Below are positions 8,749 to 43,099 of a stretch of DNA of 64,000 nt, piece by piece. Numbering within the stretch: position 1 is the stretch's first letter; each line of letters starts with the position of its first letter. The DNA lies in contig CM074804.1 of assembly GCA_037447605.1 (NCBI GenBank), positions 496,001 through 560,000 of the forward strand, in the 5' to 3' direction. A program made the translations under genes and the position numbers. This stretch comes from Zygnema circumcarinatum SAG 698-1b. Taxonomy: Eukaryota; Plantae; Zygnematophyceae. Under the pieces are notes generated by a model. It was not told the origin of the DNA and ran no database searches. It worked only from the letters and a program-made list of their open reading frames with translations.

Positions 8749-8794
<46 letters not shown>

Positions 8795-11431: not shown

Positions 11432-12560
11432 TGGCCCTATAGACGAGGGAGGGAGCTGTGGTTTGGCATTCAATTTTGGGTAGGAACTGACTAATGGTCA
11501 GGAAAAATGACGAATGGTCATAGGGCTGAGGGCTATGGGATGAGTCATATGAGCATCGATGGTCCACCTTTTGCTACCCCAGTTCACCCCTCCCTCCACC
11601 TTCACCAAAATGGCTCGTCACTGCAATGGATGTGGTCGCATGAGGCCGTGTTGTTGCTTTTCATGCATGGGATGTCATGTCAAGCCATGACATGACATGT
11701 GCATGGACAAACATAGTTTTAACCATGGGGAGCTCTTCAGCGAGGCGCTATACAACATGAAAATTGTATTGCCATTGGTCTCACGAGGGTTGCGATACCA
11801 TACGATGACATGACACGACATGACATGGCATCGCCCTCGTGAGATCAATGCCAATCCCGAATTTCAATTTCAACATGAGTCTGCCATTTGTAATGACTAC
11901 TGATTTGCTGGTTAACCAACTAGTCAACCAACAAGTTGAGTCAATTTGTTCAACTGGGCTCACTAGCCAACTAGGCCAGCTCGTCATTGTACGGTAACCG
12001 CTTCGTCCGTACAGCACAATCTGCCGTATAGTACGGTCTGCACGAACCATCCACGTGGCGGTTTCCTCCCGAGCGCAATGTGGCGCGACCTCTGACAGGG
12101 CCCTACCACACGTGTGAACACTCGCATGTGTGGGTTCACACGTGCGAGCCTCGCACGTGCGGGCCCGGTCGGGCAGCCCCGCTCTCTTGGGAGGCGGCAG
12201 CGCGCGCCAGCTGGCGGCAGTGGAGGGGAGAGGGGGGGCGCCGCGTGGCAGCAAGTGAGGGCGGGGGAGGGAGAGGGAGAGGGAGGGAGAGGGATAGGGA
12301 GAGGGAGAGGGAGAGGGAGAGGGAGGGGAGAAGCCATGGTTGCCTGCGCTTGAGGAGGAGCAGGAGCAGCAGGAGTAGGAGCAGGAGGAGGAGGAGGAAC
12401 AGCAGGGCGTTGGGCAGTATCAGCAAGTGGAGGAGGAGGAGAGGGAGGGGAGGAGAGGGAGGGGGAGGAGAAGGAGAGGGGAAGGGAAAAGGGAGGGGTA
12501 GAGGAAGGACAGGGGGGAAGGAGAGGGAAGGGAGGGAGGGAGGAACGTGACATTGCAGCC

Positions 12561-14743
12561 ATGTCAAGCTCCATTTGCCCGAAGGAGATTTTGGTGGAGG
12601 AGGGAGACACGCTGTGGACATTAGGGCAAAAGCTGAATGTAGATTGGCTGGAGCTGCAGGCCTGCAATAACTTGAAGGATGACCTAATTTTTGCGGGAGA
12701 GTTCCTGAAAGTGCCGCAGATCTCCCGTGTTGCAACTTCCAAGCCGCACGTGCCGCGCCCTGCAGCACCTCCTGTCAGTACGAAGGTGGTGCTGCAGAAG
12801 AAAACGAAGCCTGTTGTGGTGCAGGCAGGGGATACTGCATGGGATATTGCAATCAAGTTTGGAATGACACTGGAGGAGCTTGAAGCTGTGAATTCAAACA
12901 TTTCGGATTTTATTTATCCTGGCGATGTCCTTTACTTGCCAGAGGATGCAGTGGAGCGCCACAGGGCCTTCACTTCGCTAAAGCCTGTGAAGGCAAAGTT
13001 CAAAGGCGTCTCACCGAATGCACATTTCTTTGATGTCTTTCCCCCAGAGAAAGGTAATGGCAGCGGTGGATAGTTAATTTACTGGCAGGAAATGCTGGAA
13101 ATGTGGCGTACGTCGTCAGAATTTCGTTTTCTGAAGCTTTTAAAGCTTGACCTAGAAATGTAAAGTCAAGATTTGAAGCTTGCGAGGCGGCTCTCCTCCC
13201 CATTATTGTAGACTTTCTTCTCTTGTGTTGCTCGAGCTGTAGACGCCTTTTCGCTTCGTGTCTTGCAGTCCTTGTAATGGACCCCTACCTTCTGAAGGGT
13301 CTGAGGCAATGCAGAATCAAACCATTGCGATCCTTGGAAGTGTGTTCATTGCAGAGGTCGACGTGTATAGGGAGAAACATCGAGGATTGCTTGATGGCAT
13401 GCGCCTGGTTGAAACCAGCTTCATCATGCCAGCTCCGGTTGGTGATGATGGGTTGAGCATAGGACCCCTGCAAATCAGGTAATGTCTTAAAATATGTTCG
13501 CCCTATCGCCCTGGCCTTACACGACCTTCGTCTGTAGTATTCTGTCTACTCTGGGTTCTTTATATTGAGATTCAAGTGCCGAGGATCTTTCTTGGCATTC
13601 ATCGCATGTGCTGGCTGGCAACAGCCAACAAGCAGCGAAGCGATAGCAGTGGCTCTCGGTGTGCAATGCAGGTCAATCTTGTCATCTCCTCTGAAGAGGA
13701 TCATTATCCTTTTCAATAGCATGGCCATCGTTCATGGAGAGGTATCAGGGCTGTTTAGGGTAAGCTAGGGACCTTGCTTGTCAACCCTAAATGGGCGAAT
13801 GGATTGGTTTATTATTTCAATCAAATAGTTTTGACCTTTGTTTCTGGTCTTTGTCAATATGTTTGTGCAGTCATGACTACCACACAGATGCCTGGTGGCT
13901 AGCAAAGTCTCCTGCGCAATATGAACATTGCGAGGATGTTGAATACTCAGAGCGGACTGTCATCAATTACTGGCTGCGATACTGTCCGTGGGCTCTGGAG
14001 TTTGATGACTTAGAAACACTTGCGCGCATACACAATGGAGGTCCACGCTTCTGGCGGCACATAAAGACTGCCCGTTACTGGTGAGTGCCTGCTTGCCTTG
14101 CTTCCTTTCTCCTCTCTGTTTTCCATTTTTTTTTTAGAACAGAGAGAGCCATTCCCAGTTGTTCGAATACACGTTAGATTTCCTTTTTGACCGATGCTAT
14201 CAACCTTCCGAGTCGAATGCTTTCTTGAATGAAGAACATTTCCCTCCCTTTTCATCTTGAATTGGGATGTTGGCAGAAGTGTTGGGAGGGGGGGGGGGGC
14301 GTTTGTGTCGAATTTATTGAGCAGTACAATGGAATGTAGCATAACAATGCTTGACGGTTGCATGCCCCTCGTTGAAGATACAAATGATGTGTTGCATCTC
14401 CATTGTGGGCTAGGAAGTAACTTTAGTTTCAGTTTCCGTTTCAGTTTCAATCTTACCTCTAAGTCATCTTCTTCTTGGGCGTGGTTGGTGCGGAATTTGC
14501 GAAATTTTCAGGAAAAAAGTGAGGAGTGCCATGAGGCAATTTGGGTACTACAAGGGTATTCCGGAATTGAACCCTAATCTGTCGACGAGCCGCCTCTCCT
14601 CGAATGGAATGTTCCCCATCCTGCAAAAGCATCTGGCTATGAATGTGCCGTGGATCGATCCTCAAGGGTGGAACTATGACTCTATCGATTATAATGCTCT
14701 TTTGGATTCCCTGGAATCGAAATCCCGGCGCAGAAGCAGATAA
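12561..14743 (+). CDS. Two LysM domains fused to an invertebrate-type (destabilase-like) lysozyme domain; 352 aa, exons 12561-13053, 13355-13478, 13871-14080, 14512-14743
   Basis: LysM1 is VEEGDTLWTLGQKLNVDWLELQACNNLKDDLIFAGEFLKVP. LysM2 is VQAGDTAWDIAIKFGMTLEELEAVNSNISDFIYPGDVLYLP. The C-terminal domain LLDGMRLVETS...VGDDGLSIGPLQISHDYHTDAW...CED...ETLARIHNGGP...TARYWKKV fits the i-type lysozyme pattern. All four exons join in frame at GT-AG sites. Confidence 0.85.
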
Positions 14744-16020
14744 GGAAGGTCGAGGCTGCAGGCCTTGCAGCAAAAGTTGCAGTTATCTCTCCCTCCCTCT
14801 TTCCCTCCATCAAGAATCTTCAGACTTACGGTCCCCTGTGTCATTAGGGCATCCTCCAGTCGCCACTCTTCAATTAGGGTCTGACTGCTGGAAAAGGAAA
14901 GCCCAAGCAGGAGGCAGTGAAGGGTCATGGGTGCTGTAAGGCGGCCAAGCAGGGGGATCTCTCTCTCGCTCCTCGCCCCTCCCTCTCCCACCATGTAAGC
15001 AGAGGCTAAAGGCATACATAGACAGATAAGTTCAGAGAACTTCATATTCTGTAAAGGTGCAGCGTGGCAATACTTGGGCTGAGCTGCTTTTGTGCTTTAT
15101 GGTTGGAAGATACCGTTGTAAGGTCCGCATTTTGCAAATGCGCCGGAGCTTCCTCTTGGACTGCGGAGCTCCATAGGAGCCACAGCAAACAGTCGTTTAT
15201 GGTTTTTGGTTTTGGGTCTTTGGTTTCTGGTGTTGATTTTTGGGTTTCCTTAATTTATATAGATTTGTTTCATCCGTGGATGATGAATTTTACCTGTTTC
15301 AAATATCTGCTTAGTCTATTTGCCCCTCTCTCCCTCACTCCCTCCCCCATCTTTCTTCCCCCTCCCCCCTTCCCCCTTCCCCCTCACCCTTTCCCCTCCC
15401 CCTTTCCTCTCCCTCCCTTATTCTCCCTGTCCGCAGCCTTTCTATGGATGCCTAGTTGAGGTAGTTTTCAAGAGCTCCATGGAACATGAGCGTCTCCACG
15501 TTTGAATTTTCAACATACTAATCCCTGAGCAAACAAAACATAAACACATAGTGCAGACTGTTTTCACATGCATGATCTGATTGGAGATGCCCTGCAGTGC
15601 CACCTGGATTTGGAATATGAATTAAATACACAAAAAAAATTGCGGATGGAGGGGGCGAGAGAAAGGGAGGGCAGGAAGGGCAGCGAGGAAAGGGAGGGGG
15701 AGAGGGCGAGAGTAAATGGGAGAGGGCGATGGGGGAGGGAGAAGAAGATCTCAAAGTGTAGTTGACAGGAAAAAACTTGGTATTGAAGGGTAGCTCTCAT
15801 CAGAAGCCTAACCTCTTTCAAACCAGCTTCTTGACAGAACTTCTCCTTTTCCATTTTTCACACCCCGCTAAATTGCCGGGCGCACAACATCCGCCTCAAC
15901 TAGGAATCCTTCAAGGAGACCACAAATAAATGAAGTTGGCGAGGCCCCACCAAGCCCTAACTTCCATCACCTGTTTGCCATTTACTAAGAAAGGGAGCCT
16001 ACATCTGATAGGTGCATCCA

Positions 16021-16310
<290 letters not shown>

Positions 16311-16394
16311 AGAGGAGATATTTTCAATAACTTTGTACTTTCTTACATGCAAAAAACCTGCCAGCTGAACTGAACAAACGGCCCCCAACTACTC

Positions 16395-17838
16395 TCAGCT
16401 TGACTCCTCCTCTTCTGCCTTCTTGTCATCTTCCTCCTCTTCTTCCTTAAAGATGAAGCTTGTCGACCTCTTTGAAAGGACAGCCTTGGCGAGAGAATAC
16501 GCCTTCTCAGCCGCCACCCTTCCTTGGCCCAGCCAGATAGCCTTGCGGATCTTCGTCTTTGTCCTCGACATCTTCTTCTTGGGTACTATATGAAAACAAA
16601 GCAAAACGACAAATGGGGAGATCCATAGTGGGTGCATTGCCTTAGCGAATCTTCTCTGCCCTCACAACGGGGTTCTTAAAGCAGAAAGAGACACATCGGA
16701 GGTTGAGGTCAAAGTCCTCATTGCCAAAATTGGGACGAGCTAAAGCAGAGGGAGAGAGAGAGAGGGAGAAAGTCTGTGGTGTGACAGTAGGCTGAGTGAC
16801 ACCATAGAAATGCAAACGTGCTTCTACAGTTTACTATCTCAGTCAGTTGCTACGTGCAATGCCTTACAGGAAAACTGCAATATCAACCCAAACCCGAAAC
16901 CCGAGCTTTAAGACCGGTGAATCAGTCGAGGCATTAATTGGCAGTTGCACAATAACCACTAAGGTGCTAATCGACTTTTAGAAAAAATCTTAAAACTTCG
17001 CATACTGTTTCACTACAGTTGCCAATTGATCACTACCTTTGACATCCCAATGCTGAACAACAGGCTGCTTAAGCCAGCAAAAGGTCAGGTAAGGTTGGTC
17101 CATGTTTAGCCAATAGAAACGGTGCAGCTTGCAAAGTGAGAACAGGATCCGAAATCATTTGAAAACTGACAATTGAGGGGGAATTCCACCCCTTAAAATA
17201 GTCTTCATGCAGCTGATCTCAGGCCTTGTGGATACGGCTTATTTCCTTCTAAATTTGCCTGCTCTTTCTCTCCCTCTCTCCGTCTGCTTTTGACTCAATA
17301 TAGACCTTAAATAAGGGCTGATACATATCCATGTATGAAAGTCATGATCCCTGGCAAATGAAAAATGTAATCTGCCAACTGGAACATTCTCACAACCGCG
17401 GGAATCCCCCTTACCACATTGGCTCAAATGTTGAAGGACATCAACACAAAATTCATTCAGGAACTTACTTCCAATCCTCGCCTTACAGCCATTACAAACA
17501 AACCCAAATCACAAACACTGACACCCTATCACTCCTCCAGAAGCAGCAAGACTCTCAAGCCAGCCCTCCTTACCCGCCATGGCTATCCTTGCAGGCCCTG
17601 CAACGTCCAGGCCTGAAGCTGAAAACAGGTCCGACTCGCCGCCCAAGAAAGCGGAGCTCCTTCCTGCCACGTGGCATCCAGACGCCGGCAGCCGAGCAGA
17701 CTCCAACTTCTGCAGCATCGACACGTGTCCCGGCCTCACTGACGCCACGTGGCGTGCGGCTGTGGCGGGGGCAGAGCAGGAGGCTGCGGAGAAGGAGCCG
17801 CACGCTGCGACCGAAGCTTGAGCCGCCATGGCCGCCAT
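16395..17838 (-). CDS. rpl32: Nuclear-encoded plastid-type 50S ribosomal protein L32 with transit peptide
   Basis: Last exon 16585-16395 (acceptor TTTTCATATAG) encodes (V/L)PKKKMSRTKTKIRKAIWLGQGRVAAEKAYSLAKAVLSKRSTSF, which resembles plastid Rpl32 (AVPKKR...IRK.IW...KA.SL.KS), plus an acidic tail. Exon from 17838 encodes an Ala/Ser-rich presequence with SAFLG. The donor site and any middle exon are unresolved. Confidence 0.75.
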
Positions 17839-18366
17839 GGCCCGCTCTTTGAGAGTGTGCGAGGGCGAGAGTGAGAGGGAGGGGGAGAGAGGGCGAGGGA
17901 GAGAGAGGGAGACGGGTCAAGGGGAGGGTGTTCAGGTTTTGAGACACAGAGAGGCGCCATTTAGGGTTAGGGCGGCGTTATCCGTTTGGAGGGTTCAGTG
18001 CCACGTCACATGTGCCAGTTCCGCTGCTGAAAACGGCCGTCGGGCGTCTGTGATTTGGCTGAAGGCCCCGACCACAGGGCCATCAACACGTGTCCATTTC
18101 CAGTTGGTTCGTACGGTCGTGACGCGACATGTGTTAAGTGAAAAGGGTCAAAGGGTTCCATGCTGATGTTGTTACAAAAATCCGTAAAATTCACGGTTTG
18201 AACTGGAACGGAACAGCATAGAAAGGCGTGGAACGACGCTATCCATGGATGCAAACTGGTTGCTTCATTCATAGAAATACTAAATTTGGAATTTCGCCGT
18301 AAAACAAATTTCGAGACCAGCACACCCATGTGCTTTCCCCCCAAAAACGATCCCTCAAAAAAGTCA

Positions 18367-20908
18367 CTATGTCTTTACAGGGACCTGTGCTGGGGTCTCT
18401 TTGCTCTCTCGCCCTCCATGTTTGCTCCCTCCCCCCTTTCTCCCACTGTTTTCTCGGTCCTGAGTGGGTGTGGGAGGGGGAGCGGGAGGGGCTGTCTCTC
18501 CCTTCTCTCCGCTCTCAACCTTCTCGCTCTTGTCTCCGTTTCTTCTTGTGTGTGCTTCTCCCTCCTTTTCTCTTCCGCTCTCCTTCTCCTCCTCCTCCTC
18601 CTCCTCCTTCCCCTTGCTCACTCCCGCCTTCTCTTTCCCTTGTCCATGGCCAGCAGGTTCCACCTTTTCTACTTTGCCATCTCCTCCTGCAAACATTGGC
18701 AGAAGAAGTGATACCTTTATAAGGACGACGATAACCAAAGACTTCAAGTTATAAAGAGGATATCAATGGTAAATTTCTCTCGCTCTATTCTCAAAGTTAG
18801 AGCCTCAGCAAGAAAGAGCAATTCAGCTTTAACGCAGTCCCACTGCCCATAGCGGGCGGCCAATAGAAGTGAGAGGACCTACCAGTCACCTTCTCTCCCT
18901 TTGTCTTGAAAGTCTTCCGCATGTCAAAAGCATCTTCACTATCAGCGTAGTACTTGGCTTCAATGTCGTTGATCCTGCAGAAGCAAAGTTACGTTAAGTC
19001 GCCGAGCTCTTATCCATTAAGGGCTCCATGTTGGACTACGCGTTACTTAAGCGGCAAGAACATAAGTCAAAAGGGCAGCCTTCTGCAGATACTTTCCAGA
19101 ACCACGAGCATGATACTACACCGAACAGAGACCGCCCTCTCTATTGTGAGAGCAGTCAAAGAGCAAAATAAGCACTCACTTGTAGCCAAGAGTTTCCGTA
19201 TAAAGGTGGAATGCTGCTCGGTTGCTCTTCCGCACATGCAAGGAGACATACTCTGCTCCAAACACTTCCACCATCGCCTTCTCTATTCTGCTGTTAAGAA
19301 AGGCCTCCATGCGTGCTCATTGCAAAGCAGCAACCATTAAATTACATACATTATGCGGTAGCTCACTCGTTCAGCACACGACTCCCATCACCACCGTAAT
19401 AATCCTCCCTTTCGTTTTTGGATCACTAATGGAACCTTATGCGGCCCTAATCACTAAACAAAATAATGGAGAAAGAAAATAAATGGAACGCGAAATAACC
19501 ACCAATCTCTTACAACATTCCTAACTCATCTCAAGAACGACGCCAAAGGAAAGCACAGCAGGATACGTGCAGCACTCATGAGTTTCGTCGCCAAGCCAAG
19601 TTTGCGATGAGTCCGGAGAACTGCAAGGGATGTGATATGGCCATGACATTCTGTGGTTTCTTCTTCCCTGTTATCACATCCCACAAACGCGCCAAAGGAA
19701 GGGAAGTTTGCGATCTCAATCATCGGTCCTTTTGTAAGACAAACAGGCAACAAATGTTCAACTGCAGTATCTGTCGGTCATGCACATTTTTTTATCAGGT
19801 TCGTCCTTTTTAGGCAGATTGGAGCGTTCAGAAAGAGCCATCCGCTGGTGAAAAGACCTAAACATTACATAAAAGGGACGAGCTTTGGAGACAATGCCTT
19901 ACATTTTGGCCAACACATATCCGACGATTTTCTTGTTATAATCCTCTGCCACATAGAGCAGCTGTGGCCAAGAAAGCACATGATAAAGGTAATACTGCAA
20001 CTCCAACTCCACCGTGAAGCCAACAAGGTCAACTTCCGGATATATTGCAAACGGGCTTCCACCAAGTAGCCAATGGCTCACATTTAAGCTATGAAATCTT
20101 ATGAAGAACTAATCTGTCTGTTTGTTGTGTTCACAATTCCTGGAGAAGCTACTGTGAACCTGGTCAGGAATTTAATCAAACAAGGACGATATAGACACAC
20201 CTTCATCTGATAATTCTCCGGCAGACACAAGAGGTTGCAGTTCTGCATTGCCAGTAAGTCATCCACCTGAACCCGAAGAAAGGAGTCAGGAAGGTTCACA
20301 ACATAACTCCAAAGTTTTTTAGCAAATATGTAGAAGATGCATGTGCTTGAAGGCAGGGCTGTCGGGTTGACCTTACTTAAACAAGCTTTCATTAGAATTG
20401 GAAGGCACATAATATTTCACTATAGTTCTATTGGCTAAAGAACAGAAAAAGCGTTCAGAATTCAGCTTCAGAAAGTTGTCAACCGATCTTTTCACTCGAA
20501 AACATTTCACGCGACATAGCAAACTTGTATGCGGCTCATCTCTCCCAAAATAAGAATTTGCAAATTCATCAAAATGATCGGTGTTAAGGTCATCACGTTT
20601 AGACTTCTTGTAACACGTACTAAACTCGTGTGCTGGAACTTCCCCTCACCACGATCGAAAAAGAAAAAAAAACGCAAATTTCAAGCAGTTTTTAAATTTT
20701 TGCATAAGCTTGTAATGCAAGCGACCTGCTGCAGGCGTCGTCCTCTCTGACAACAAAATGGCAGCCATAAGGAACCAAGTCCCTGCGTGCTAAACTTGAC
20801 AGAGCTGATAGAGAAGCGAGAACAACCCTCAGGAGCCATGCAAGGAACACAGGGCAGAGCAGGAGAGAGAGGCAGAGGCCTTACCGTGGCCTGGCGAATG
20901 CAAACCAT
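18367..20908 (-). CDS. NAA10: N-alpha-acetyltransferase 10 (NatA catalytic subunit), 7 exons
   Basis: MVCIRQAT|[22 protein letters not shown]|[18 protein letters not shown]...VGYVLAKM|[30 protein letters not shown]...|[18 protein letters not shown]|[20 protein letters not shown]. The last exon (charged tail) is less certain. Confidence 0.95.
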
Positions 20909-21144
20909 GGCGTCCTGTTCTCCCTACAAAGGGCAAATCCCTGCAAGCGGCGAGGGAAGGAGGGAGTGAAGAGCGTGGGAGAGGGAGAGGGAGAGGGAGA
21001 TGAGAGGCGGCTGCCATATCGTATCGAAATATCGGAATTAATGTCGATATCGTACGTTCTGTGTACGGACGTTGGGCCTCCCCTTGGAACTGGAAGGGGG
21101 AAGGACAGGGCCTCTCCCTCTCTCTCTGTAGAGCTTCAGCCGCC
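20909..21144. promoter_or_regulatory. Short bidirectional promoter NAA10 / Era (236 bp)
   Basis: Divergent ATGs at 20908 and 21145. It holds a TATCGTATCG...ATATCGGAAT...TATCGTAC cluster flanked by GA/CT tracts. Confidence 0.65.
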
Positions 21145-21756
21145 ATGGCTGCCTCCTTGGAGCGCTCGCTGGCCTCTCTGCCACGTTCGCAGCTAGAGGA
21201 CCTCCTGGGAATGCCGGGGTTCTTTTGCGGAGGATGCAGGCAATTGAAAGGGGCACGGTTGAACGAGCTGTCGCAGCAAGGGTCACGCAAGGTTGGTGTA
21301 CTTAGGATTTCTGCACAGGGAGAGAGAAGTAGTGCAGGAAGCAAAGTTCCTTTTGAGAGTAGGAGACCGCAGGCGCCTGCTTTTTCACCTGCATTTGAAG
21401 CAGAGGAGTCTGCTAAGAAAGTTGCGCCAGTTTTTGTATATGATGAGCATATTGCACGCAAGAAGCCGCTGCAGTTTCCCCTTGGTAGACAAGATGCAGA
21501 GGAGGATTTGCCTCTTACAGGAATGGCAGTCCCTCCAAATCATAAAAGTGGTGAGTGCAGTCGTCCTTGAATCATTTCTCACTCTTTTTAATAACATTAA
21601 ACAAGCTATTGTTATGGAGGGAGTGGCTCTTAATTATTAAGAAGGACGTCGCATTCGCATTAAAACAATAGGATGTTGCTACGCTTAAGCAGGAATTCGA
21701 GCTAATGGCGCCATTGATGTCAAGGAGGCTACACTTGCAGTACTTCTAACTCCTTA

Positions 21757-21801
<45 letters not shown>

Positions 21802-24716
21802 TTTCTTGAAACATAATGTGCTAGATAGGAGAGGGATAGAGCTGACTTGGTTCTAGAAATTGCGGAAAGGAAACATAGTCTGTTGAGGGTGCTGGGGCTG
21901 CTTATATGTCAGAACAGCGTCGCAGTATTTGCTGACAGCTACAGTACTGACGGACTATGATTTTCGGTGACTTCTGTGCCTAAAATGCACGTGAAAGTCA
22001 GCTCGACTATGAAATTTAACTTTTTGAGAACTCAGTGAAGTGCTCTCGCCAGACGACGTCGTATCAGAAATGATGAAACTCCCGCAGTTTCTTTAAGTAT
22101 TTCTTACTATGACGCCTCTCGCTGTCTCTCTCCCACTCTCGGAATAGTCCTCTTGAAAATGAAATGAATATTCGGTATCTCTTTGGATGTGGAACAGGCT
22201 ATGTGGCAATTATTGGTCGTCCCAACGCTGGCAAGAGTACCCTCCTGAACCAGTTAATTGGGCAAAAGCTTTCCATTGTTACACAAAAGCCGCAAACTAC
22301 ACGACACCGCATTCTAGGCATCTGTTCCGGTCGAGAATTTCAGGTGCTACTTGAAGCCAGATGCTGAGTGCAAGCATGATATTGTGTCAATTAGCTTTTC
22401 AGTCCTTTACCATGTAAAATGTCAATATCTCGGATTTTATAGGTTCTCCAAGTGAGATAGAAAACAAGCAACCTTTGTAGGTGTGGACATTGCCTGCAAG
22501 ATGACGTATCCATTGCGAAACTCGGTAATTTCTTGATGAATTATGGTGCTCCCTTTCGTTTCTCAGATGGTGCTCTATGACACTCCTGGTGTCATGGCAA
22601 ACAAAATGCACAAACTGGATGAGGTGATGATGCAAAATGTGCGCAGTGCAGCAGTGAATGCCGACTGCATCGTATTGGTGGTTGACATCTGCCTGGCTCC
22701 AGAACAAGTGCGTCTCCATATTCCCTTCTTTCTCCTTCATCTGCCGCTTTCTCCTTTTGCTTGACTATAAGTGAAGCGCACGCAACGAATGTTGTTGAGT
22801 ACAGTTAAAGCCAAATCGAAAGGTCTTTTTGTCCATAGACAAATGTTAATTATGGCGTATAGATTTTTGTGTGAAAATGTCCCTTGGCCATGGTTGTAGG
22901 TGATGGACATGCTGCAAGAGGCACAAGCAGCAGCTGCTGAAACGAGGCCATTGCTGCTAATTCTGAACAAGAAGGACCTGCTTAAGCCAGGAGAAATTGC
23001 AAAGAAGCTGCAGGTATTGTTTGTTTTCGTTTAGCTGCAAAGAGTAACCAATTTGGGGTCGAGCAGGTGATGATTGATATGGGGTGACGCCCTCGTGGGC
23101 TTCTTATCCTTTCTCCTTTCCAAGCAGCTGTATTGTTCAATTGCTTAAGCTTGTTGGCAAAGATTTTCTCTCTGCAGACCGAGCGCATTGTAGTGAATCT
23201 TGATTCTTATGGCGATGAACATTGAGCTTTTGTAGCAACTGAGTTTAGACAAGGGTACACTATGCTTTTATCTTTTACTCAATCTGGTTGAGTCAGTTGC
23301 GGAGTTGAACAAGGAGCAGAATCGAATCTGTACAGGCAATCAACATTGGATTTCCACGCATTGTTTTCCTTACTGCATAGTTCACGGACGGTGAAAGTAA
23401 CATTCTCTTAGAATGTGAAGAGTAACACATTTATCCTACCTGTGTACGATTTCTTACCGAGGCATCTGCGTGATATCTGTGGCAGTGGTATGAAGCCAAC
23501 AGCGGTGCTAGTGATGTGATAGCAGTGAGTGCCAAATATGGCCATGGCTGCGATCTGCTCCGAAAGTGGGCATTATCTAAACTGCCTCTTGGCCCTGCAT
23601 ATTACCCAAAAGTGAGTTTCTTTTGCCTTCTTCAATTGCCTTACATAGAATCCGTTGAGTTTAGTGACTTTTTTATGTCAAGCAGACAAACATCCGTTTC
23701 TGCATTATGGAACAATTGTCTGGATGCAAGTTTCTTGTATTCAATGCAGGCCCCTTCACCTGATGCAGGGGCCAAAGTTGGGATAATCTGTGCATCAGGA
23801 TATCGTAAGCGAGCATCCGGAACGTTTCTTTGTATCAGAGATAGTGCGAGAGAAGGTCCTCCTTCAGTACCATCAGGAGATCCCGTATGCAGCTCAGGTG
23901 CAGCATAGAAACTTCAAGCTCTGCATCATCATTGCATTTGCTGTGTGTAATCCATCTGATGTTTTTGAGTTGAAGTAGTTTTGCTTCTCCTCCCCATGTT
24001 TTCGTAGTGGTTGTGATATAATATGTGGAGAGTACGACCAAGGTAGCTCAGCCCCTTTCAAGTACGACTTATCTGTCTGAAATTTCCATCGTCATGCCTT
24101 CGGACTCAGGTTGTTTGCTGTGGGAGTGGCTGAACAGGTGAATGTGCTTAACTATTTTGAAAGGGATGGCAAGGCCAAGGACTTCGTAGAGCTGGAGATT
24201 GTGGTTGAGAGGGAGTCACAAAAGGCTATACTGGTCGGGAAGGTAAGTTGGAGGAGCATCACATAGCAAGCAGTACTAAGTGATAAGCTCTGTGTATATA
24301 TGGCGTGCCTCAGAGTGTTGTTCTATGAAGGCCATATAAACAGTTGAAGTATGCACTGCTTAATGGGGCAATTTGGAAGAGGGCTTTGCAGGAAGGGAGG
24401 GCCATCAAGGCTTTGGCTACAGCATCCCGTTTGGAGATTGAAGATTTCGTGGGGCGGCCCATATTCTTGGAGGTGTGCCTATGTCACCCTTTGGGCTTTG
24501 TAGCGTTGAGCTTTTGGCACCTCTTTGACCCTGAACCCCTACAAGCCCTAAAAATCAATGACAGCATGAACTAAGGGAGACTCTTTATTCCCATCACCTA
24601 ACAACCGCAGCTATTTCACCGCCTGGTTGCAGATTCGGGTGAAGGTGAAGGAAGGATGGCGGGAAGATGAGAAGCTCCTTCAGGATTTCGGGTTGGACAG
24701 CAAACGCATGTTGTGA
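21145..24716 (+). CDS. ERA1: Organellar (probably plastid) GTPase Era, 9 exons
   Basis: N-terminal extension then HKSG|[15 protein letters not shown] (G1), KPQTTR (G2), DTPG (G3), NKKD (G4), VSAK (G5), and KH-domain motifs [40 protein letters not shown]. Confidence 0.95.
21760..21800. repeat. (GT)n microsatellite in Era intron 1
   Basis: About 20 GT units. Confidence 0.95.
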
Positions 24717-24869
24717 CTTGTGACTCTTTACCTTATTGTAAAGGAAGCCTAAAATGAAAATTACTCGCCCCCATGTGTGACCTCCAAATGAAGGCCATGT
24801 TGCCCATGCCCATCGAAAGGTCGCCATGCCATCCATGTCATCGTCTTGTCACATGCCGTATGTCATGCG

Positions 24870-25233
24870 TATAGCTCCGTATTATACACTTTTAGGTTCG
24901 ATACAATGTATAATACAGTATTAATACTGTATTATACACTGTATAATACCTTCACGCAGCCGTACAATCGGAACATAGATATGTACGGAAATTATGTACG
25001 GAAGGGGTGTACCAGCATATACGGACAAAGTCACACGTGTTGAGTGTTTGGCACGTGACGTGACTTGGCAAGTGCTGGAATTTCAATATTATAATCAACC
25101 TTTGTTCAACTAAGCACGAAAATAAAATAAATACGTTAAATACATTTAAAATACACTGTATTTTTAAATGTTGTATAATACGCATGTATTATACAGTGTA
25201 TTAATACACGCGTTTGATACATACGGAGCTATA
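24870..25233. mobile_element. MITE (364 bp) with 13-bp TIR and 8-bp TSD, hAT-like
   Basis: TIR TATAGCTCCGTAT / ATACGGAGCTATA, flanked on both sides by GTCATGCG (24862-24869 and 25234-25241). AT-rich palindromic interior. Confidence 0.8.
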
Positions 25234-33141: not shown

Positions 33142-34867
33142 ACGAACCTGCTGAAGATAAGAGTTTGGTTTGGATTGACCCATCATCCAGTTCGGCCAAG
33201 TGGCAGCTGGGGCTGTGTTTGGGACGGCAGCCCCCTTCCTGCCGCCCTTGCAACGAACATGGATGGGCAGTGGCAACATTGAAAATGGGGCTCTCTATGT
33301 GGCTGCTGATTTATTTGGCTTCTGTTGTTTACACGTCAAAAAATCGATATTGGTGGACATTTCAGGGACGGTTGAAATGAACCTCAACAAGTGCGCAAAG
33401 GCAGGGGTAGGGGGTAGCGGGAAAAGGGAGGGGGAAATGTTAAGTCATGCGTGTAGGACGGAGGTCAGTGCAGCATTGCACCGCTGTCCTGCACTGAACT
33501 CCGTGATTGTCCTAAAAATCAAAAAGGAATCTCAAGCAAACGGGAAAAGAAAAAGATGCAACATTCGCTTTCTAAATGAGAAGTATTCAAAACTACAGTT
33601 AAACAGAAAAGCGAAACATGCATGCGTCAATGATGTTTTGATAGATGATATCCGATTCCGATTTTCCTCAAATATTTTTGACAATCGAACAGCAATTGCC
33701 TCAAGACGAATCCCATACAACGGGTGCTCTCAGCGAAGATCAAGCGGCAGCGTGCGCTACCTGCAGGAAGTGTGCCCATGCAGCGCTATCTACTGAAGCG
33801 CTCTGAAACTGTACTTCCTCCTACAACTCATTTTTAGACAGGCCATAAGATTTTGCCTGAAGTGAAAGAAAAGAGTGAAAGAGAGAAGTTGTTTTAAAGG
33901 GGAAGACATCAGAAATCAAGGTCCGCCGCACAGCAGGGCTTCCGCAGGGATGACAATATCTGCCACATGTTATACCCTCGTAGCTACTGATGGGGAGTAG
34001 AACGCAACTGGAACTACAACTGCTTGTGATGCTTGGAGTTCTCTCCTGAGTCCATGGAGCCATGCCAGCATTACCCAGACCTGCATTGGAACCATGAAAA
34101 GGAAAGTATAAGAACCTGCAAAACTATTCCCACATATCAACGTAATAACTTCCTCCTTGCTATTCTGGTTCAATCATTTTTTAAGGGATAAAGATTTCGC
34201 ACTTGCGAAGCATTCATATTATACTCAATGCAGGCATCTGTGCGACAACTGAAACAAGCGACACACACTGATCCGCATGCGTGAATAGCATATGAAATGG
34301 CCAAGGAAAAGGTCTGGCATAGTTTCTACAGATTCTGAATAAGCAAAAGAATTCGCGATGGTCAACATCATTCAAGGGAGCGCACTAAAAGAAGCAGTGT
34401 CAACTGCAGTTGAAGTCCATCAATTTGCAGCCACAATTAACTGCAAGCAAAGTACCAAGGTAAGTTTAGTATGCTAACGATCTCGGGGCGGACGGATCTT
34501 CCGCTCCGAACGGATTCGGGCAGGCCCTAACATATTTTTTTCTCTCAAAAAAACAACAGGCTGCGGATCAAGATCCTCGTGCGTTGCCTTTTTAAAGAAA
34601 TGTCTAGGGGGAGTCAGACCTTGACCATCGCCCGCGGAATTGAAAGATAGATTTCGACGGCGGAAAGGTATTGATTTCGATTTCCGAATTCGGTTCGGAA
34701 ACCACGGCTCCCCCCGAACCTGTCTGTCACGTCCGTACGGCGGAATAGGTTACAAAAATGCCCCCAAATTTCAGAATTCCGCGCTCCGAAACGGGGCCTC
34801 CAGAGGCCCCCCGTTTCGAAATTCCAGCTTTCCGCCGATGAGGAATCGTGCCCCGCCTTGTCGCCAT

Positions 34868-35448
34868 TAGGGCGTGTCAGACTTAACAAAATGTTACGAA
34901 TATCGAGTTTTTAGTATTACGAGAATCGAGGTTACTAAGTACTAAAAATCATCGCGCCCCCGAACCTAAACCGAACCGAACGAAAGTCAACTGTGCTAAG
35001 TCAACGGGTCAACGTTGCGAAGATTGACCCGTGGGGTTTACTGAAATTGCATTTCTTCGCACGATTTTGTTCGCACCCAAAAGAGGCGCCGAAATGGACG
35101 TGCGAAGAAAATACTGGCGAAAATCGCGTCAACGTGACGTCATGGTTGTATTCCCGGCTACCCGCCCGCGCCCGCGCCCGCCCGTGACGCGCAACACGAC
35201 ACAACGACAAGCGGTCTCCGCGCGCCGCGCCGGCGCTGTTTCTAAGTCTGAGGGCCCCGCGCGAGGGCGAAGTTGCGAAGACGGCGTTTGGAGAAGTGCG
35301 AAGACGGCGATCGCGGAGTGCGAACAGGACCGCGCCGCGAGTGCGAAAAACTACGCTCGGGAATTTTAGTTTTACTGACGTTGACTCGAAATGTTACGAA
35401 TATCGAGTTTTTAGTATTACGAGAATTTTTTAAGTCTGACACGCCCTA
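34868..35448. mobile_element. hAT-type MITE A (581 bp)
   Basis: 18-bp TIR TAGGGCGTGTCAGACTTA / TAAGTCTGACACGCCCTA. A 38-bp subterminal direct repeat (AAATGTTACGAATATCGAGTTTTTAGTATTACGAGAAT) sits near both ends. Confidence 0.85.
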
Positions 35449-35449
35449 T

Positions 35450-36009
35450 TAGGGGGGGTCAGACCTTGACCATCGCCAAACCAACTTCGTAAGCCCGTCG
35501 GGCCTATTCCGCCGTGTACGGCAGGCCTTTTTCGCAAAAAGTGGCCGTTCGGCAGGTTCGGGCGCCGCGAATTCAAGAAAATTATTATTTTACCTTCGTA
35601 TCTCCGAGCCAGGTCTGACCCCCCCTTTTCGCCCCGCCGCGCTCCCTCCGCCGCCCGCCGCCCGCCGCCCGCCGCCCTCCGTTTTGTCGCCACGCGCGCT
35701 TCACACATGCGAGAGGCGCTCGCACGTGCGTGACGCGCATGGCGACAAGGCGGTGCACGATGCCTCATCGGCGGAAAGCTGGAATTTCGAAACGCAGAGC
35801 CTCCGGAGGCCCTGCGTTTCGGCGAGCGGATTTCGGCGGATTTCGGAAATTTGGGGGCATTTTTGTAACCTATTCCGTAGTACGGACGGGACATGACAGG
35901 TTCGGGGGAGCCGTGGCTTCCGACCCGAAACCTGGAAACGAAATCAATACCTTTCCGTATAGGGAATCTTTGAATTTCGTAAGCGATGGTCAAGGCCTGA
36001 CCCCCCCTA
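35450..36009. mobile_element. hAT-type MITE B (560 bp), same family as the host foldback element
   Basis: TIR TAGGGGGGGTCAGACCTTGACCATCGC / GCGATGGTCAAGGCCTGACCCCCCCTA. Its right two-thirds are homologous to 39290-39672. Confidence 0.85.
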
Positions 36010-36010
36010 T

Positions 36011-36414
36011 TAGGGATGGATTAATTACGACTATATAATATATATTATATTATACAACTGTGACGACTAGATAACGGCTGATATATATTACTTTACAACG
36101 CCTTTACAACATGTACGGTCGGACGGTCGTATGGTCGTACGATTGTACGGTAGTATGCGGTACGGATGTACGGTCGAGCACGAGCAGACAGAGTGAACCA
36201 GACGGACGCATTTCGCAACGCCAACGCCAAAACGATCTTATTTTGGTATTCTACGACCGTACGACCGTACGACTACGGTCGTACGGTCTTAAATGTTCAA
36301 AACGAGTGGGTATAATATATGTAATAAAGTGTTTTAGTTTGTAATATATTACTACTTTTAAACCCGTTGTAAAGTATATAATGTATTCGGAATTTATAAC
36401 GCGGGCCATCCCTA
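36011..36414. mobile_element. hAT-type MITE C (404 bp)
   Basis: TIR TAGGGATGG / CCATCCCTA. Interior has many CGTACG/GTACGG/CCGTAC repeats. It is followed by GTCGCCAT (36415-36422), identical to 34860-34867. Confidence 0.8.
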
Positions 36415-37431
36415 GTCGCCATGCGCGTCACGCACGAGCGAGCACCTCTCGCACGTGTGCGGCGCGCGTGGCGACAAAATGGAGTACACCGGTACAAACA
36501 TGCCGTTTCGGGCATTGTCAACCGACAATCACAATCCCGCGATTACGAAAATCGTAAAAGAAAAGACCACATCCTCGTCCAAAGACGATTGTCCAAAAAA
36601 ATAAATAAATAAAATAAATAAAATAAATAAATAAATAAATAATAATAAATAGAGTCGTTTCGTGCCGGTACGGTGATGTCGACGACGTTTCGATGACGAA
36701 ACGGTTACGGAACAACCGCGATATCATCTTCCCCTGTTCTTCACGTCCTCCCGATTTCCATTTTCTTACACTCGCCTGTCTAGCTGAAGAGTTGCTGCTG
36801 ATGCTTGCTGCCCTATTGTTCCGAAATCTACCATAACCAACACTCTTGTCGCTGCGGATCCTCTACCTTTTTGTTGCTGCAGCTCCTGCTGCTGCTGCTT
36901 GTGTTGCTACTGATTTTGTTTCTACCAGAGAAATGGAAAAAACCGACAATTAATGATTGGTGGAGGAAGGAGGAGGAAGGAACATGGAGTGTGGTGAAAG
37001 GGAGAATGGTGGAAGGGCGAAGGAAGAAAAAGGAGAGGGTGTTGAGGAAGGATGGAGGCTACTAACTGACAAGTCAGTCAATCAGTCAGTCTGTCAGTTT
37101 GTCGGCCAGTCTGTGAGTCCGTCTGTCAGTCAGTCACTCAAAAATCCAGTCTGTGTTTGTCAGTCAATCAGTCAGTCAGTTAGGTTGTCCATCCATTAAT
37201 CAGTCAGTCCTTAGGCCAGTCCTCCGTACTTTAAAGATTTTGCTGGACATATGGAAACGCTGGACATATAGAAACGTTGGACATATTGAAAAGCTGGACA
37301 TATTGAAATGCTGGACATATGGATATTTGGAATTTTGGAAGTTTTGGAAATTACCAAAAAAAAAAAAAACTTGAGATAAGATGGTAAAGATGAGATCATG
37401 ATGTACATAAGGTTCGGACTTACGCTCACTC

Positions 37432-38501
37432 ATGTGTTGTATAGCAAATAACCCTGGACAGATTTCGGAAAGACCCGGTACTGGAGATGATGATGTTCAA
37501 AAAGATCGAAAAATGTTGGAAACATAAGATCTTGATGTAAAATGGTTCGTACTTACGCTTACACTTATGTGTTGTATAGCAAATAACCCTGGACAGATTT
37601 CGGAAGGACCTGGTCCTAGAGATGATGACGTTCGAAAAGATCGAAGAATGTCCGGATCTGTCGATCTTGATGAAAAAGAAGGTTACGTATTTATGCTACT
37701 GGCGTGTGTTGTATAGCAAATAACCCTGGACAGATTTCGGAAGGATTCGGTCCTTGTGATAATGATGTTTGCATTCTTCATCATTTTTTTCTTCACCTTT
37801 TTTATCTTTCTTTTTCTTTTTCTTTCTTTCTTGTTGTTTTTTTTTTTTTCTGTGTGAGAGTGTGTGCGTTTGTGTGTCTCTGTTTGTGTGACTGTTTGAA
37901 TGTGCACATTCTTTTAACAGAAAAAACAAAAAAAAAAAAAATCAATCTAAATATTACAACATGAGGCCTCACGTTGTAATAAAAAGTTTGATTTTCCTTT
38001 TTTTTTTGTTTCTTCTGTTAAAAGAATTCGCACATTCAAACAGTCACACAAACAGAGACACACAAACGCACACACTCTCACACAGAAAAAAAAAAAAACA
38101 ACAAGAAAGAAAGAAAAAGAAAAAGAAAGATAAAAAGGTGAAGAAGAAAATGATGAAGAATGCGAACATCATTATCTCCAGGACCGAGTCCTTCCGAAAT
38201 CTGTCCAGGGTTATTTGCTATACAACACATGAGTGTAAGCGTAAGTACGAACCTTTTTTCATCAAGATCAGATGTATCCGACATTCTTCGATCTTTTCGA
38301 ACATCATCATCTCCAAGACCGGGTCCTTCCGAAATCTGTCCAGGGTTATTTGCTATACAACACATAAGCGTAAGCGTAAGTACGAACCATTTTACATCAA
38401 GATCTTATGTTTCCGACATTTTTCGATCTTTTCGAACATCATCATCTCCAGGACCGGGTCCTTCCAAAATCTATCCAGGGTTATTTGCTATACAACACAT
38501 G
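37432..38501. repeat. About 136-bp tandem repeat, roughly three units per arm, in inverted orientation across the palindrome centre
   Basis: TGTGTTGTATAGCAAATAACCCTGGACAGATTTCGGAAGGACC recurs at about 37432, 37568 and 37704, with reverse complements ending near 38230, 38365 and 38501. Confidence 0.85.
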
Positions 38502-40246
38502 AGTGAGCGTAAGTACGAATCTTATGTACATCATGATCTCATCTTTACCATCTTATCTCAAGTTTTTTTTTTTTGGTAATTTCCAAAACTTCCAAAATTC
38601 CAAATATCCATATGTCCAGCATTTCAATATGTCCAACTTTTCAATATGTCCAGCGTTCTATATGTCCAGGGTTTCCATATGTCCAGCAAAATCTTTAAAG
38701 TCCGGAGGACTGGCCTAAGGACTAACTGATTAATGGATGGACAACCTAACTGATTGACTGACTGACTGACCGATAGACTAACATACACAGACTGGCCGAC
38801 AAACTGACTGACTGACTGACTGACCTGTCAGTTAGTAGCCTCATCCTTCCTCAACACCCTCTCCTTTTTCTTCCTTCGCCCTTCCACCATTCTCCCTTTC
38901 ACCACACTCCATGTTCCTTCCTCCTCCTTCCTCCACTAATCATTATTTGTCGGTTTTTTCCATATCTCTTGTAGAAACAAAATCAGCAGCAACACAAGCA
39001 GCAGCAGCAGAAAGGCAGAGGATCCGCAGCGACAAGAGTGTTGGTTACGGTAGATTTCGGAACAATAGGGCAGCAAGCATAAGTAGCAACTCGTCAGCTA
39101 GACAAGCGAGTGTAAGAAAATGGAAGTCGGAAGGACGTGAAGAACAGGGGAAGATGATATTGCGGTTGTTCCGTAACCGTTTCGTCATCGAAACGTCGTA
39201 GACGTCACCGTACCGGCACGAAACGGCTCTATTTTGATTGTCGGTTGACAATGCCCGAAACGGCATGTTTGTACCGGTGTGTGTTGGTCTTTTCGCGCCC
39301 CCGCGCTCCCTCCGCCGCCCGCCGCCTGCCGCCCGCCGCCCGCCGCCCGCCGCCCGCCGCCCTCCGTTTTGTCGCCACGCGCGCCTCACACGTGCGAGAG
39401 GCGCTCGCACGTACGTGACGCGCATGGCGACAAAGCGGGGCACGATTCCTCATCGGCGGAAAGCTGGAATTTCGAAACGGGGGGCCACCTCGGGGAGCGC
39501 GGAATTCTAAAATTTGGAGACATTTTTGTAACCTATTCCGCCGTACGGACGTGACAGACAGGTTCGGGGGGAGCCGTGGTTTCCGAACCAAATTCGTGAA
39601 TCGAAATCAATACCTTTCCGCCGACAAAATCTTTCAATTCCGCGGGCGATGGTCAAGGTCTGACTCCCCCTAATCGGTTTCCAATCAAAAGCGATAACCG
39701 GTTTCCAATTCCGCTAATCAGGAATCTACGCAACTGAACAGAACACAATATTAAACAGCTTATGTGTTCGATCAGTTTCCGTTTCAGTTCACTTCACATA
39801 ATTAAGGTTCGAAGACATTTCTATAAAAAGGCAACGCGCGAGGATCTTGATCCACAGCCTGTTGTTTGGAGGGGAGGGGGGTTATCATTCTCGTTTTTCT
39901 TTTGTGCTTCGGTCCTTTGCGCCTAGTCAGTTCCTCGTGGTTCCCCATGCTGCTTTTGTACATGCACATTTGATGGCATCATCGCCTCATCGTGAGATCA
40001 ATGCCACATCCTTTTGTTCATCAAACCACACCAGCTAAAGAAACCATAAAGTACCCTTCTTTTATTGATGGACCCTCACTCATAAGATACACAATTCACA
40101 ATACAGTTGTAAAGCTCACACCCCTTTATAAATTCCAAAGAAAAAATCAATTGACATTTTAATCAACCCATCTCCATGACGAGCCACCCTGACCCTTAAC
40201 CCTAAACTTCTTCACCCCCAGCTCCTCCCCACCCCCCCTTGGAGGC

Positions 40247-43099
40247 TCACAAAAACACCATCCGTGTGGCGAGGCCCACAACGAAGGGGTCCATAATGAG
40301 GCGAGTCAACAGATAGAACACTACTCCTAATGTAATGGAGATTGGGAGGGCAGGGAGAGCCTTCCGGTAAAGAGCCAAAAGCAGCAGAGTGGCCCCCAGC
40401 CCTGCAATGATGGCTAAGTAGCACGCATACACCGTCATAAGGTCATACATTGCCGCTCTTCCAACCAATACACTGTAAAATATGAAGTCTCCCAGCCCCA
40501 ATTTTATCGAATCTGGCAGCCCGAACTCTCTCGCAGCTATTTCTGGGCCTGTCTCGCGGTTCCCTGATCGTTCCGTTACGGCATCCGACATGTCGAACAC
40601 AACGGATTCCGTTCCAACCTCAAGTTGGTGGGCCTCTACTTGGCGGAGCTCCTCCATGGCTCCTACTAAGGGAATGGCCTCCTCATCTACTGCACTGCTG
40701 CTGCTTCCAGCTTCCAATCTCCCTTCACTATTGTGGGTCTCAGCCCTTACATGCCTTGCTTCAATGTCTAAGCTCGAAAGCCCACTCCCTCCACGATCTT
40801 GCCGCAACTTCTCAGCTTCTCTCCCAGACCCCACCTGCCCTCTCTCTTGAGACCCAATTTCTGCTCCTTGCTCTCCCTGAGAGAGAAGAGATCCCTGCTC
40901 GTCGTCACCTACACTTGAATGCAGTGCAACTCCCTCTCCCCCTCCTCTTCTAATCGGAAATGTCGGCCTATTTGTTCCTCTAGACCTCTGTCTACGCTCT
41001 AACCGCCCCCCATGTCGAGGAGAGGAAGGGGGAGAACTCGCAAAGGGCTGCTCAACATAGCGAGAATGTTGAGCTCCTCTTCCATGGAGGGGACGAGCCT
41101 CATATATGAGGGCAGGAATCTCTTCATCCCTTTCTATAGCCAGTTCGACAAGCAGCTTCAATGGGCCACCTGTTGAAAACGCAGTGCATAAGAACAGAAA
41201 ATAGCTTTAACGCTGGCGACAAACAGGTAGTGAGAGGCAAACGAGAAGGTAAAGAGCGTCCATGTGACATTAGATAAGCAGAAAGGTTACAGGTGTCAGG
41301 ATGCTATTGGCCCACCTGGCATGAGGACCGCTATAAGGTCGTATACGGCCATTGCCAAAAGGAGTAGCCATGTCGTCCATTCCGGCAGGTGGGTGAACCA
41401 AAAGGCCACCACTGCCCCTATGATGACTAGATATGACTGCGTGAGGAGGACGGGCACGCGGCAGAAGAAGACGGCGAGGACTCCCACAATGGAGAAGTTG
41501 TAAAGAATGATGCTAAAGGTGATGATGTCAATGGGAATGGACAGGGCCTGACAGGGCACGAGTTACAGACAAGTAGGTCAGAGTTTGCAGATCTTAGCAT
41601 GATGTAATTCTTGACAAGGAAGGGCTCCGCTGATCTTCTGCAATCGCTACAGGTTCATAGGAGACTGTGAACATATATCATGTAATGTATTCTAAAGTAT
41701 TTCAAATGACGCAATTCGGCTGCAGCTCCACATATGTTCAGGTTAAACTAGCTTCACCTCATGGATTAGATGGACCACTAAAACGGAATTTATTTGCAAA
41801 TCCTACTATGCTTGATTAGTTGTCAAATGCCATTGAGTTTCTGATACCCAGCATTAACCTTGAATGAGCTCAAGATGCAATGCGATTACCCATGCTATAC
41901 GAACTACGACATTCACAGGCGTAATCAAAAAAAAATTTTGCAATCTAGAAGGTGATCAGATGATTCCGTACCACAGTCAAAATAGGCCGCGCTCAAAAGA
42001 TCTGGTAGCTTACCTGGATAATTTGCACTGCCACGGAGCCACCTAGCCACGCCAATATTGTGAAGGCAGAGAATGCCATGTAGCCCCATATGAGGCGTGT
42101 GCACCGCAACCAAAAGCATCCCACAAGGATGAAAGTGACAATTGTAATTGACACAATGAACACAACGGCATTGAGCAGTCCGCCCTCAAACTTCTGGACA
42201 TCCGAGTCCGTGCTGCACAAAGCATGTACAGCGGATCTCAAATTTAACACAAGCTTAATCCAGCTTCATTGTGCGAATAAAACACTGAGGACCCGTCGGA
42301 CTTATCGGCAACACTCAGAGGGACGGTATCAAGACTTAAAAAGAAAAAAACATGCAAGAATTTCTAGAAAAAAATGAAACATTCACGTTCTAAAGAACGC
42401 AAACGCAGCATCAAACATTCACCGGCTTCACCCTTGCGAGAGGTAAGCTTTCTATGGGTCGTTCTACATCGTCATTTCCAGTGCCTATCCGGTTTCTTGA
42501 TGTTTGTATGCCCGTAGATATGACCTGCTCTATATTGTTCTTAAGTTGGCACAATCACTACTGAAATTGAACTAGAATGAGACAAACACATTCAGCAGGA
42601 GCAGCACCTTGCTGCACTGCATGATAGAGTATGCATTGGTGCAGGACTTTAGTCGCTGGTTCGAAATTGAAAACACTAAAGATTTCAAACATTGAGCATT
42701 TTATGTGCCCGGCTCGGTCTCTATTCACTGGTACAGAGAAGCACAAGTCACTTTAGTCGGACATAAATGCCGGATAAATGCGAGCCCTTCCTCTGCGCTT
42801 TTATGAGGAACAAGAATTTGAATTTCAGATTCGGAATAAATGCTAGTGCCAATGGATATGGGATGGAAAACATGGAGGGCGAATATTCAGCGTCCAAAAG
42901 CGGAGAAATGAACACAGGACTTGGAAACACACCTCCTTTCGTGATAAATGAGAGCACCAATAGCCGGGCCGCTCTCCGGAGAGCCGTTTGGAGTGAGGCC
43001 ACGCACCATGAGCAGCACGAGCAGCATGCATGCGGATACTGGAGTCACTATTGCAGTTATTTCTGCTCCCAGGCTCTCTAATACGCTAACCGGCTCCAT
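40247..43099 (-). CDS. PSEN: Presenilin (gamma-secretase catalytic subunit), 4 exons
   Basis: [60 protein letters not shown]|[11 protein letters not shown]...[38 protein letters not shown]. The YD, GLGD and PALP motifs are intact. Confidence 0.96.

Follow-up and report, generated by a model that had tools for sequence, protein, structure and literature searches.

How three transposon-like elements with complete inverted termini could come to lie one nucleotide apart inside a single target-site duplication is the question raised by a locus of the zygnematophycean alga Zygnema circumcarinatum SAG 698-1b. The locus was analyzed within a window of 64,000 nucleotides (assembly GCA_037447605.1, contig CM074804.1, positions 496,001 to 560,000; all coordinates below are those of the window), in which three elements, here named A, B and C, are found in the left arm of a larger foldback-like host element. 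The explanation held to be probable, though far from certain, is that transposase-cut ends of A, B and C, considered as hAT-like elements, were joined directly to each other by end-joining, in a manner resembling the signal joints of V(D)J recombination. Read directly from the window sequence, the block runs on the forward strand as GTCGCCAT / A / T / B / T / C / GTCGCCAT, with the following parts:

34860 to 34867, forward strand: left 8-bp copy of the target-site duplication (TSD), GTCGCCAT, which aligns with the same 8 bp of the host's mirror arm as the right copy and fits the hAT target pattern NTNNNNAN
34868 to 35448, forward strand: element A, 581 bp, with a 19-bp perfect terminal inverted repeat (TIR), TAGGGCGTGTCAGACTTAA; reads contain multiple copies of it as well as short derivatives and solo ends
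35449, forward strand: a lone T separating A's right end from B's left end, giving CCCTA-T-TAGGG; read from the sequence, with weak 31-mer support
35450 to 36009, forward strand: element B, 560 bp, with a 27-nt TIR (26/27), TAGGGGGGGTCAGACCTTGACCATCGC; a contig of sequencing run X7 stops exactly at 35450
36010, forward strand: a lone T separating B's right end from C's left end, read from the sequence
36011 to 36414, forward strand: element C, 404 bp, with a 9-bp TIR, TAGGGATGG; run X7 has contig ends at 36011 and near 36414
36415 to 36422, forward strand: right 8-bp copy of the TSD, GTCGCCAT, closing the block 34868-36414

Each of the three elements has its own TAGGG...CCCTA inverted ends, and all six termini are complete and start with TAGGG. 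The TIR variants pair as they had been parsed in the initial annotation of this DNA (GGGGGAG with GGGGGAG, and GGGGGGG with GGGGGGG), whose coordinates and order for the duplications, elements and spacers matched the sequence exactly. Its statement that both junctions read CCCTA-T-TAGGG was confirmed as well, given that the joint motif CCCTANTAGGG was found twice in the window, both times at this block, against an expectation of 0.01 in shuffled sequence. Moreover, when the four TAGGG starts and five CCCTA-like ends of the region were combined, a single one of the 16 start/end pairings, 34868-36414, was flanked by a direct repeat longer than 3 nt, which had a length of 8 nt, so that the middle element has no TSD of its own, as had been claimed. 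The same flanking-repeat test ruled out alternative terminus pairings (e.g., 34605-36009 and 35450-39672) and other duplication lengths. A T stands before each of the three left ends, and T is also the last base of GTCGCCAT; the possibility that the spacer T belonged to the elements was discarded, since run X7 has contigs terminating exactly at 35450 and 36011.

The TIRs of hAT elements are short and start with YARNG (e.g., CAGGG or TAGGG), and the composite as a whole presents the characters of this superfamily, namely an 8-bp TSD, YARNG-type TAGGG ends and a target of the form NTNNNNAN. This target consensus was tabulated for Hermes (PMC2803484, Table 8), and GTCGCCAT, which represents one site only, fits it, its second position being T and its seventh A.

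The insertion of the block can be followed in the host element, since its other arm preserves the target site without the insertion:

34605 to 39672, no strand assigned: foldback-like host element, 5,068 bp; the termini are perfect over 44 nt (TAGGGGGAGTCAGACCTTGACCATCGCC...), the two arms agree at about 90%, and the axis lies near 37966
39424 to 39431, reverse strand: empty target site in the mirror arm of the host, from its alignment to both copies of GTCGCCAT

The host arms have about 2.5 kb each and are partly composed of tandem repeats (135-bp and 17-bp units), as in foldback-type elements. With 34868-36414 removed, 34605-34867 together with 36415-36484 aligned as one block of 333 columns, at 89%, to the reverse complement of 39672-39362, and both copies of GTCGCCAT corresponded to one copy at 39431-39424. 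This continuous alignment and the single copy in the mirror arm demonstrate that the block, of 1,547 bp, was inserted here and that 8 bp were duplicated in the process. The empty site had previously been taken as confirming one insertion event. The site itself was verified; what it proves is that an insertion took place with one duplication, which need not have been a single event, and it leaves room for serial events within one duplication.

A local inverted repeat of about 70 nt, TTGTCGCCATGCGCG...CGCGCGTGGCGACAA (34860-34867 with 36415-36484; mirror 39362-39431), has the target site at its foot. This repeat is kept in both host arms and inside B, and its presence in all these places makes it a possible structural hot spot for insertion.

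The independence of A, B and C was assessed by placing Logan contigs of the same organism, obtained from four public runs, on 34500-36600. In run X5, in which apparent single-copy contigs had a depth of about 58-93, the summed contig depth, which according to the warning of the tool does not equal copy number, was 50,676 at the left end of A, 55,069 in the A/B joint bin and 49,086 at the right end of C; most interiors had 7,000-25,000, the B interior 35636-35706 had 292 and the right flank 631, the depth along the block being uneven by more than 50-fold. In run X7, one contig (record 29) matched B from exactly 35450 with about 98% identity, followed by 136 nt of unlike sequence, another (record 31) matched C from exactly 36011, also with about 98% identity, followed by 173 nt of unlike sequence, and a third (record 32) stopped near 36414, at the right end of C. 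The other block boundaries showed loose contig ends with differing continuations, and short derivatives of A were present in contigs as joints skipping 526-543 nt. Since the depths are unequal and the internal boundaries coincide exactly with contig ends, A, B and C do not always accompany one another and are separately repeated families that exist apart. The initial annotation had itself named the case in which the blocks never occur alone as one that would refute it, and in the contigs they do occur apart; of its description of "three different" MITEs (miniature inverted-repeat transposable elements), the separateness of the families was upheld, whereas B as an independent MITE was not, for the reasons given below.

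Regarding the surroundings of A copies, a CCCTA-type terminus, TTCGGGCAGGCCCTA, with no partner in the window, was observed at 34515-34529, and contigs of runs X5 and X6 join about 25 nt ending at 34540 straight to the left end of A. By this contig join, a copy of A lies elsewhere at 11 nt from this terminus.

The contig evidence bears on two related alternatives, which are considered highly improbable. One of them, a single element or family with internal TIR-like sequences, was rejected on account of the exact contig stops at 35450 and 36011 and of depth differences exceeding 50-fold, which show the blocks apart. The other supposes three TA-targeting (Stowaway-like) elements inserted in adjacent TAs, because TAGGG...CCCTA can formally be parsed as TA + GGG...CCC + TA, and a TA duplication at solo copies is conceivable. 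However, three hits in adjacent TAs would be needed on top of an earlier 16-bp insertion (TATTATTA plus a second GTCGCCAT) that has no explanation, and the 8-bp duplication and YARNG-type ends point to hAT elements instead.

Another alternative is that the block was created by the assembler, through the mis-joining of repeats within the 5-kb palindrome. The region is indeed rich in high-copy repeats, within which short-read contigs break, and no contig was shown to bridge either joint with at least 31 nt on both sides. Nevertheless, a mis-join requires shared sequence in the same orientation, and the abutting ends are mutually inverted, have no overlap and are complete to the last base, twice, which makes such an error unlikely. 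Moreover, the flanks align cleanly with the mirror arm, and a 62-nt query placed on the A/B spacer, from which two 31-mers were sampled, had one of the two represented in the contigs of three samples, which belong to three studies, a weak sign that the joint exists in reads. An assembly artefact is thus regarded as very unlikely.

If the block is genuine, ordinary hAT insertion cannot have put its elements 1 nt apart, because every insertion would add a further 8-bp duplication. The mechanism of joining and the path by which the elements reached the site, as we infer them, would begin with the cleavage step. The first nick made by hAT transposase is reportedly offset by 1 nt into the flank, as Zhou et al. 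are said to have shown in 2004 (Nature 432:995). An excised or half-excised end would accordingly keep a 1-nt 5′ overhang, and two such ends, when apposed and ligated, would leave CCCTA and TAGGG a single base pair apart. The train formed in this way would end up within one GTCGCCAT duplication, in the left arm of a foldback of the family to which B belongs. Both joints of the block have the signal-joint-like configuration of complete termini with 1 nt between them, and A, B and C would best be explained as separately mobile, non-autonomous hAT-like elements.

Comparable joints have been found outside chromosomes. Episomal Ac/Ds with end-to-end joined TIRs were reportedly described by Gorbunova and Levy in 1997. 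In the circles of hobo and Hermes formed in vivo, the TIRs are intact and the gap between them is 0, 1 (A, T, G or C) or a few nt (PMC2803484), and among those recovered from flies the 1-nt joints were the commonest class (Table 3; PMC2803484, O'Brochta et al. 2009), in agreement with the earlier assertion that end-joined hAT circles with very short spacers are known. The hobo, Hermes and Ac episomes are similar to the present block in that intact hAT termini are joined directly or with few intercalary nucleotides, an arrangement read as the counterpart of the V(D)J signal joint. They differ from it in that the two ends of one element are joined in an extrachromosomal circle, whereas here the joints link elements of different families, in a chromosome and bounded by a TSD.

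The room left by the empty site for serial events leads to an alternative that is possible, if rather doubtful. Three insertions at the same 8-bp hot spot would have generated GTCGCCAT-A-GTCGCCAT-B-GTCGCCAT-C-GTCGCCAT, the spacers of which then collapsed to their last T, either because facing ends were cut and rejoined or by small deletions. This would account for the T, the last base of GTCGCCAT, before all three left ends, and the site, being at the foot of a local palindrome within a repeated family, could be a preferred target; in addition, the pairing of the unlike left end of A and right end of C would be unnecessary, and tandem transposable elements derived from repeated hits at one site have been described (PMC9659126). 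Yet three hits on the same 8 bp plus two identical 7-bp losses would be required, and the hallmark of the double-insertion model, which is the whole duplication left between copies (PMC9659126), is absent, the spacers having 1 nt and not 8. The tandem elements explained by that model are like the block in occupying one locus with a common target site, but they have the full duplication between copies of one family, while 1 nt separates three families here. If the collapse occurred by cutting and rejoining, serial insertion would become a sub-route of the direct joining of cut ends and not a true rival of it. Similarly, the Tourist and Stowaway MITE multimers, reportedly described by Jiang and Wessler in 2001, have small non-autonomous elements placed side by side; in these, however, the TA or TAA duplication is re-used as a target and a whole duplication remains between neighbours. 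As an element that duplicates 8 bp cannot give a 1-nt spacer by re-use of its TSD, the mechanism of the multimers does not apply to this block.

Direct joining of transposase-cut ends could have proceeded by three routes, and the single integration of an episomal concatemer, which the initial annotation proposed, is only one of the three that fit the data. In route (a), free excised elements would be ligated and the concatemer would then integrate via its outer ends, the left end of A and the right end of C. In route (b), neighbouring elements would be fused in cis after their facing ("reversed") ends were cut and joined mutually instead of to a target, the intervening DNA being lost and the fused product moving as a macrotransposon. 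In route (c), excised elements would be captured by end-joining at the cut end of a resident element, whose duplication would be re-used. Routes (a) and (b) require that one transposase complex pairs the left end of A with the right end of C, a pairing that is unproven for such unlike ends; route (c) avoids it but requires compatible overhangs at four junctions.

The movement of composite units by hAT ends has precedents in maize, in which Ac macrotransposons were reportedly described by Huang and Dooner in 2008. Ac macrotransposons, which have a hAT end on either side, are excised and inserted again with 8-bp duplications (PMC9910405, Sharma and Peterson 2022), and Ac composite insertions have also been characterized in maize (PMC4270019, Zhang et al. 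2014). The geometry is the same in the block studied here, where the left end of A and the right end of C point outward and are flanked by GTCGCCAT, and in both cases two correctly oriented hAT ends bound a unit that behaves, or would behave, as one transposon with a single 8-bp duplication. Unlike the block, the maize composites contain kilobases of host DNA between Ac/fAc ends of one family and have microhomology joints; the block lacks host DNA and is composed of entire elements of different families, the mobility of which as a unit is presumed.

Once the train had formed, its inner ends would probably be locked, with the left end of A and the right end of C as the only usable ones, because Hermes circles with ends 0 or 17 bp apart did not integrate and inhibited transposition, whereas spacings of 80 or 160 bp worked (PMC2803484). 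Inner ends locked in this way would make the train movable only as a unit. The circle data fit this proposal and are silent on whether the outer ends worked.

The sequences of the three elements reveal how different they are. Their GC contents are 52% in A, 60% in B and 40% in the AT-rich C. The terminus strings are TAGGGCGTGTCAGAC in A, TAGGGGG[GA]GTCAGACC in B and in the host, and TAGGGATGG in C, the last of which we take to resemble the Ac terminus. A and B have the core TAGGGnnnGTCAGAC in common. As for subterminal motifs, CCGTAC occurs in B and C, the subterminal regions of C containing seven CCGTAC/GTACGG motifs, and TTACGA occurs in A, which also carries identical 38-nt subterminal direct repeats at 34889-34926 and 35389-35426.

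B deserves particular attention due to its relation to the host. Over 35625-36009, its terminal 385 bp, B is about 83% identical to 39289-39672, which is the right end of the host foldback, and the 28 nt at its start match the terminus of the host. By this match and the common 28-nt terminus, B is a diverged deletion derivative of the foldback's own family and no ordinary independent MITE. An uninterrupted copy of the target site is found inside B, at 35739-35746, and a terminus-like sequence, AGGTCTGACCCCCCCTT, at 35611-35628. Owing to this terminus-like sequence, the left 179 bp of B (35450-35628; TAGGGGGGGTCAGACC...GGTCTGACCCCCCCTT, with T and not A as the last base) resemble a separate short element, which is followed by a truncated foldback right end, so that B gives the impression of two parts welded together, a complete short element and a truncated foldback end. 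In the bin of this internal boundary (near 35628), the summed depth is about 50 times the single-copy level, and the fused form of B may consequently be multi-copy itself.

Open frames of 187 aa (35430-35993, reverse strand) and 102 aa (35730-36038, forward strand) were observed across B and extend over the A/B and B/C joints. Neither frame has relatives in the database, no protein there matching the 187-aa one, which runs through B and the A/B joint, and both frames are probably fortuitous products of GC-rich sequence.

The composition of B is what gives some plausibility to template switching during the repair of an excision gap, in which synthesis would have run 1 base past a terminus and jumped to the flank of the next element, twice. 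Abortive gap repair and template switches are an accepted origin of internally deleted and chimeric DNA transposons, and B, with a terminus-like sequence at 35611-35628 followed by the foldback right end, resembles such a product. For the block as a whole this origin is nonetheless unlikely, as two switches located exactly 1 base beyond complete termini, with six termini intact, are not expected from it.

Several observations weigh against the direct joining of transposase-cut hAT ends, besides the failure of contigs to bridge the joints and the weak 31-mer result mentioned above. No hAT domain was detected in the five longest open reading frames of the window that were tested, an autonomous hAT element thus not being found. 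The 8-bp TSD is established for the composite only, given that contig placement provides solo ends of A, B and C without paired flanks, and the train is a single instance in the 64-kb window. The left end of A and the right end of C have only TAGGG in common and share no subterminal 6-mer. Both spacers, as well as the base before A, are T; the T before each left end could reflect a target preference at position 8, or the spacers could be descended from the T of GTCGCCAT. Finally, the flanking-repeat test revealed no duplication around the host foldback (34605-39672), which counts here because its termini are the same as those of B.

Searches beyond the block gave few related sequences. TIR searches of the window found A-, B- and C-type termini in this locus only, and a scan of the window for other YARNG-ended elements with 8-bp duplications found none. 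A perfect-TIR scan of the window retrieved one unrelated candidate, a 364-bp element at 24870-25233 whose 13-nt TIR (TATAGCTCCGTAT) and 8-bp flanking repeat (GTCATGCG) are both perfect; it belongs to an unrelated family, and its ends are not of the YARNG type. A scan of public metagenomes with the 16-nt terminus of B gave 120 loci, all of them chance matches, since 0 of the 120 contained the longer B terminus.

Around the host element, the palindrome was observed to extend past the host termini, with 55 nt at 34551-34605 repeated in inverted orientation (95%) at 39813-39867; on the right side only, 140 nt (39673-39812) separate the host terminus from this outer inverted repeat. Loose read ends mark 34550/34551 as the border between two repeats. 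An open reading frame resembling a presenilin exon (40247-41161, reverse strand; Pfam PF01080, E 1e-50) starts about 600 nt to the right of the foldback; its best database relatives were 40-46% identical over most of the query, and no usable orthologue was available for a comparison of the same locus. Another open reading frame, with double-stranded RNA-binding and Dicer-dimerisation domains, was located at 59970-61043 on the forward strand.

Taken as a whole, the initial interpretation is partly supported. End-joined hAT episomes and hAT macrotransposons were known already, and what is probably new is the variant in which different families are joined in a chromosome. If the train is a single instance, it would be a curiosity of repair at one locus. 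It is also conceivable, as a tentative proposal, that the signal-joint-like welding of the ends of different hAT families into trains is a regular process in this genome. In that case, the 1-nt inner joints being uncuttable, a train would move only as a unit and could found a new composite MITE family, and this process would have given rise to B, with its short element and truncated foldback end, at an earlier time.

If the reading of directly joined ends is right, the block would connect the 1-nt offset of hAT cleavage and the end-joined "episomes", whose biological role is unclear, with the origin of composite and chimeric MITE families, three subjects hitherto treated separately, and a genome-wide excess of TIR-to-TIR joints of 0-2 nt would be predicted. 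The block would then be a fossil of heterologous transposon ends that were joined like V(D)J signal joints and fixed in the chromosome of a wild genome, suggesting a simple way by which unrelated non-autonomous elements may be welded into new mobile units.

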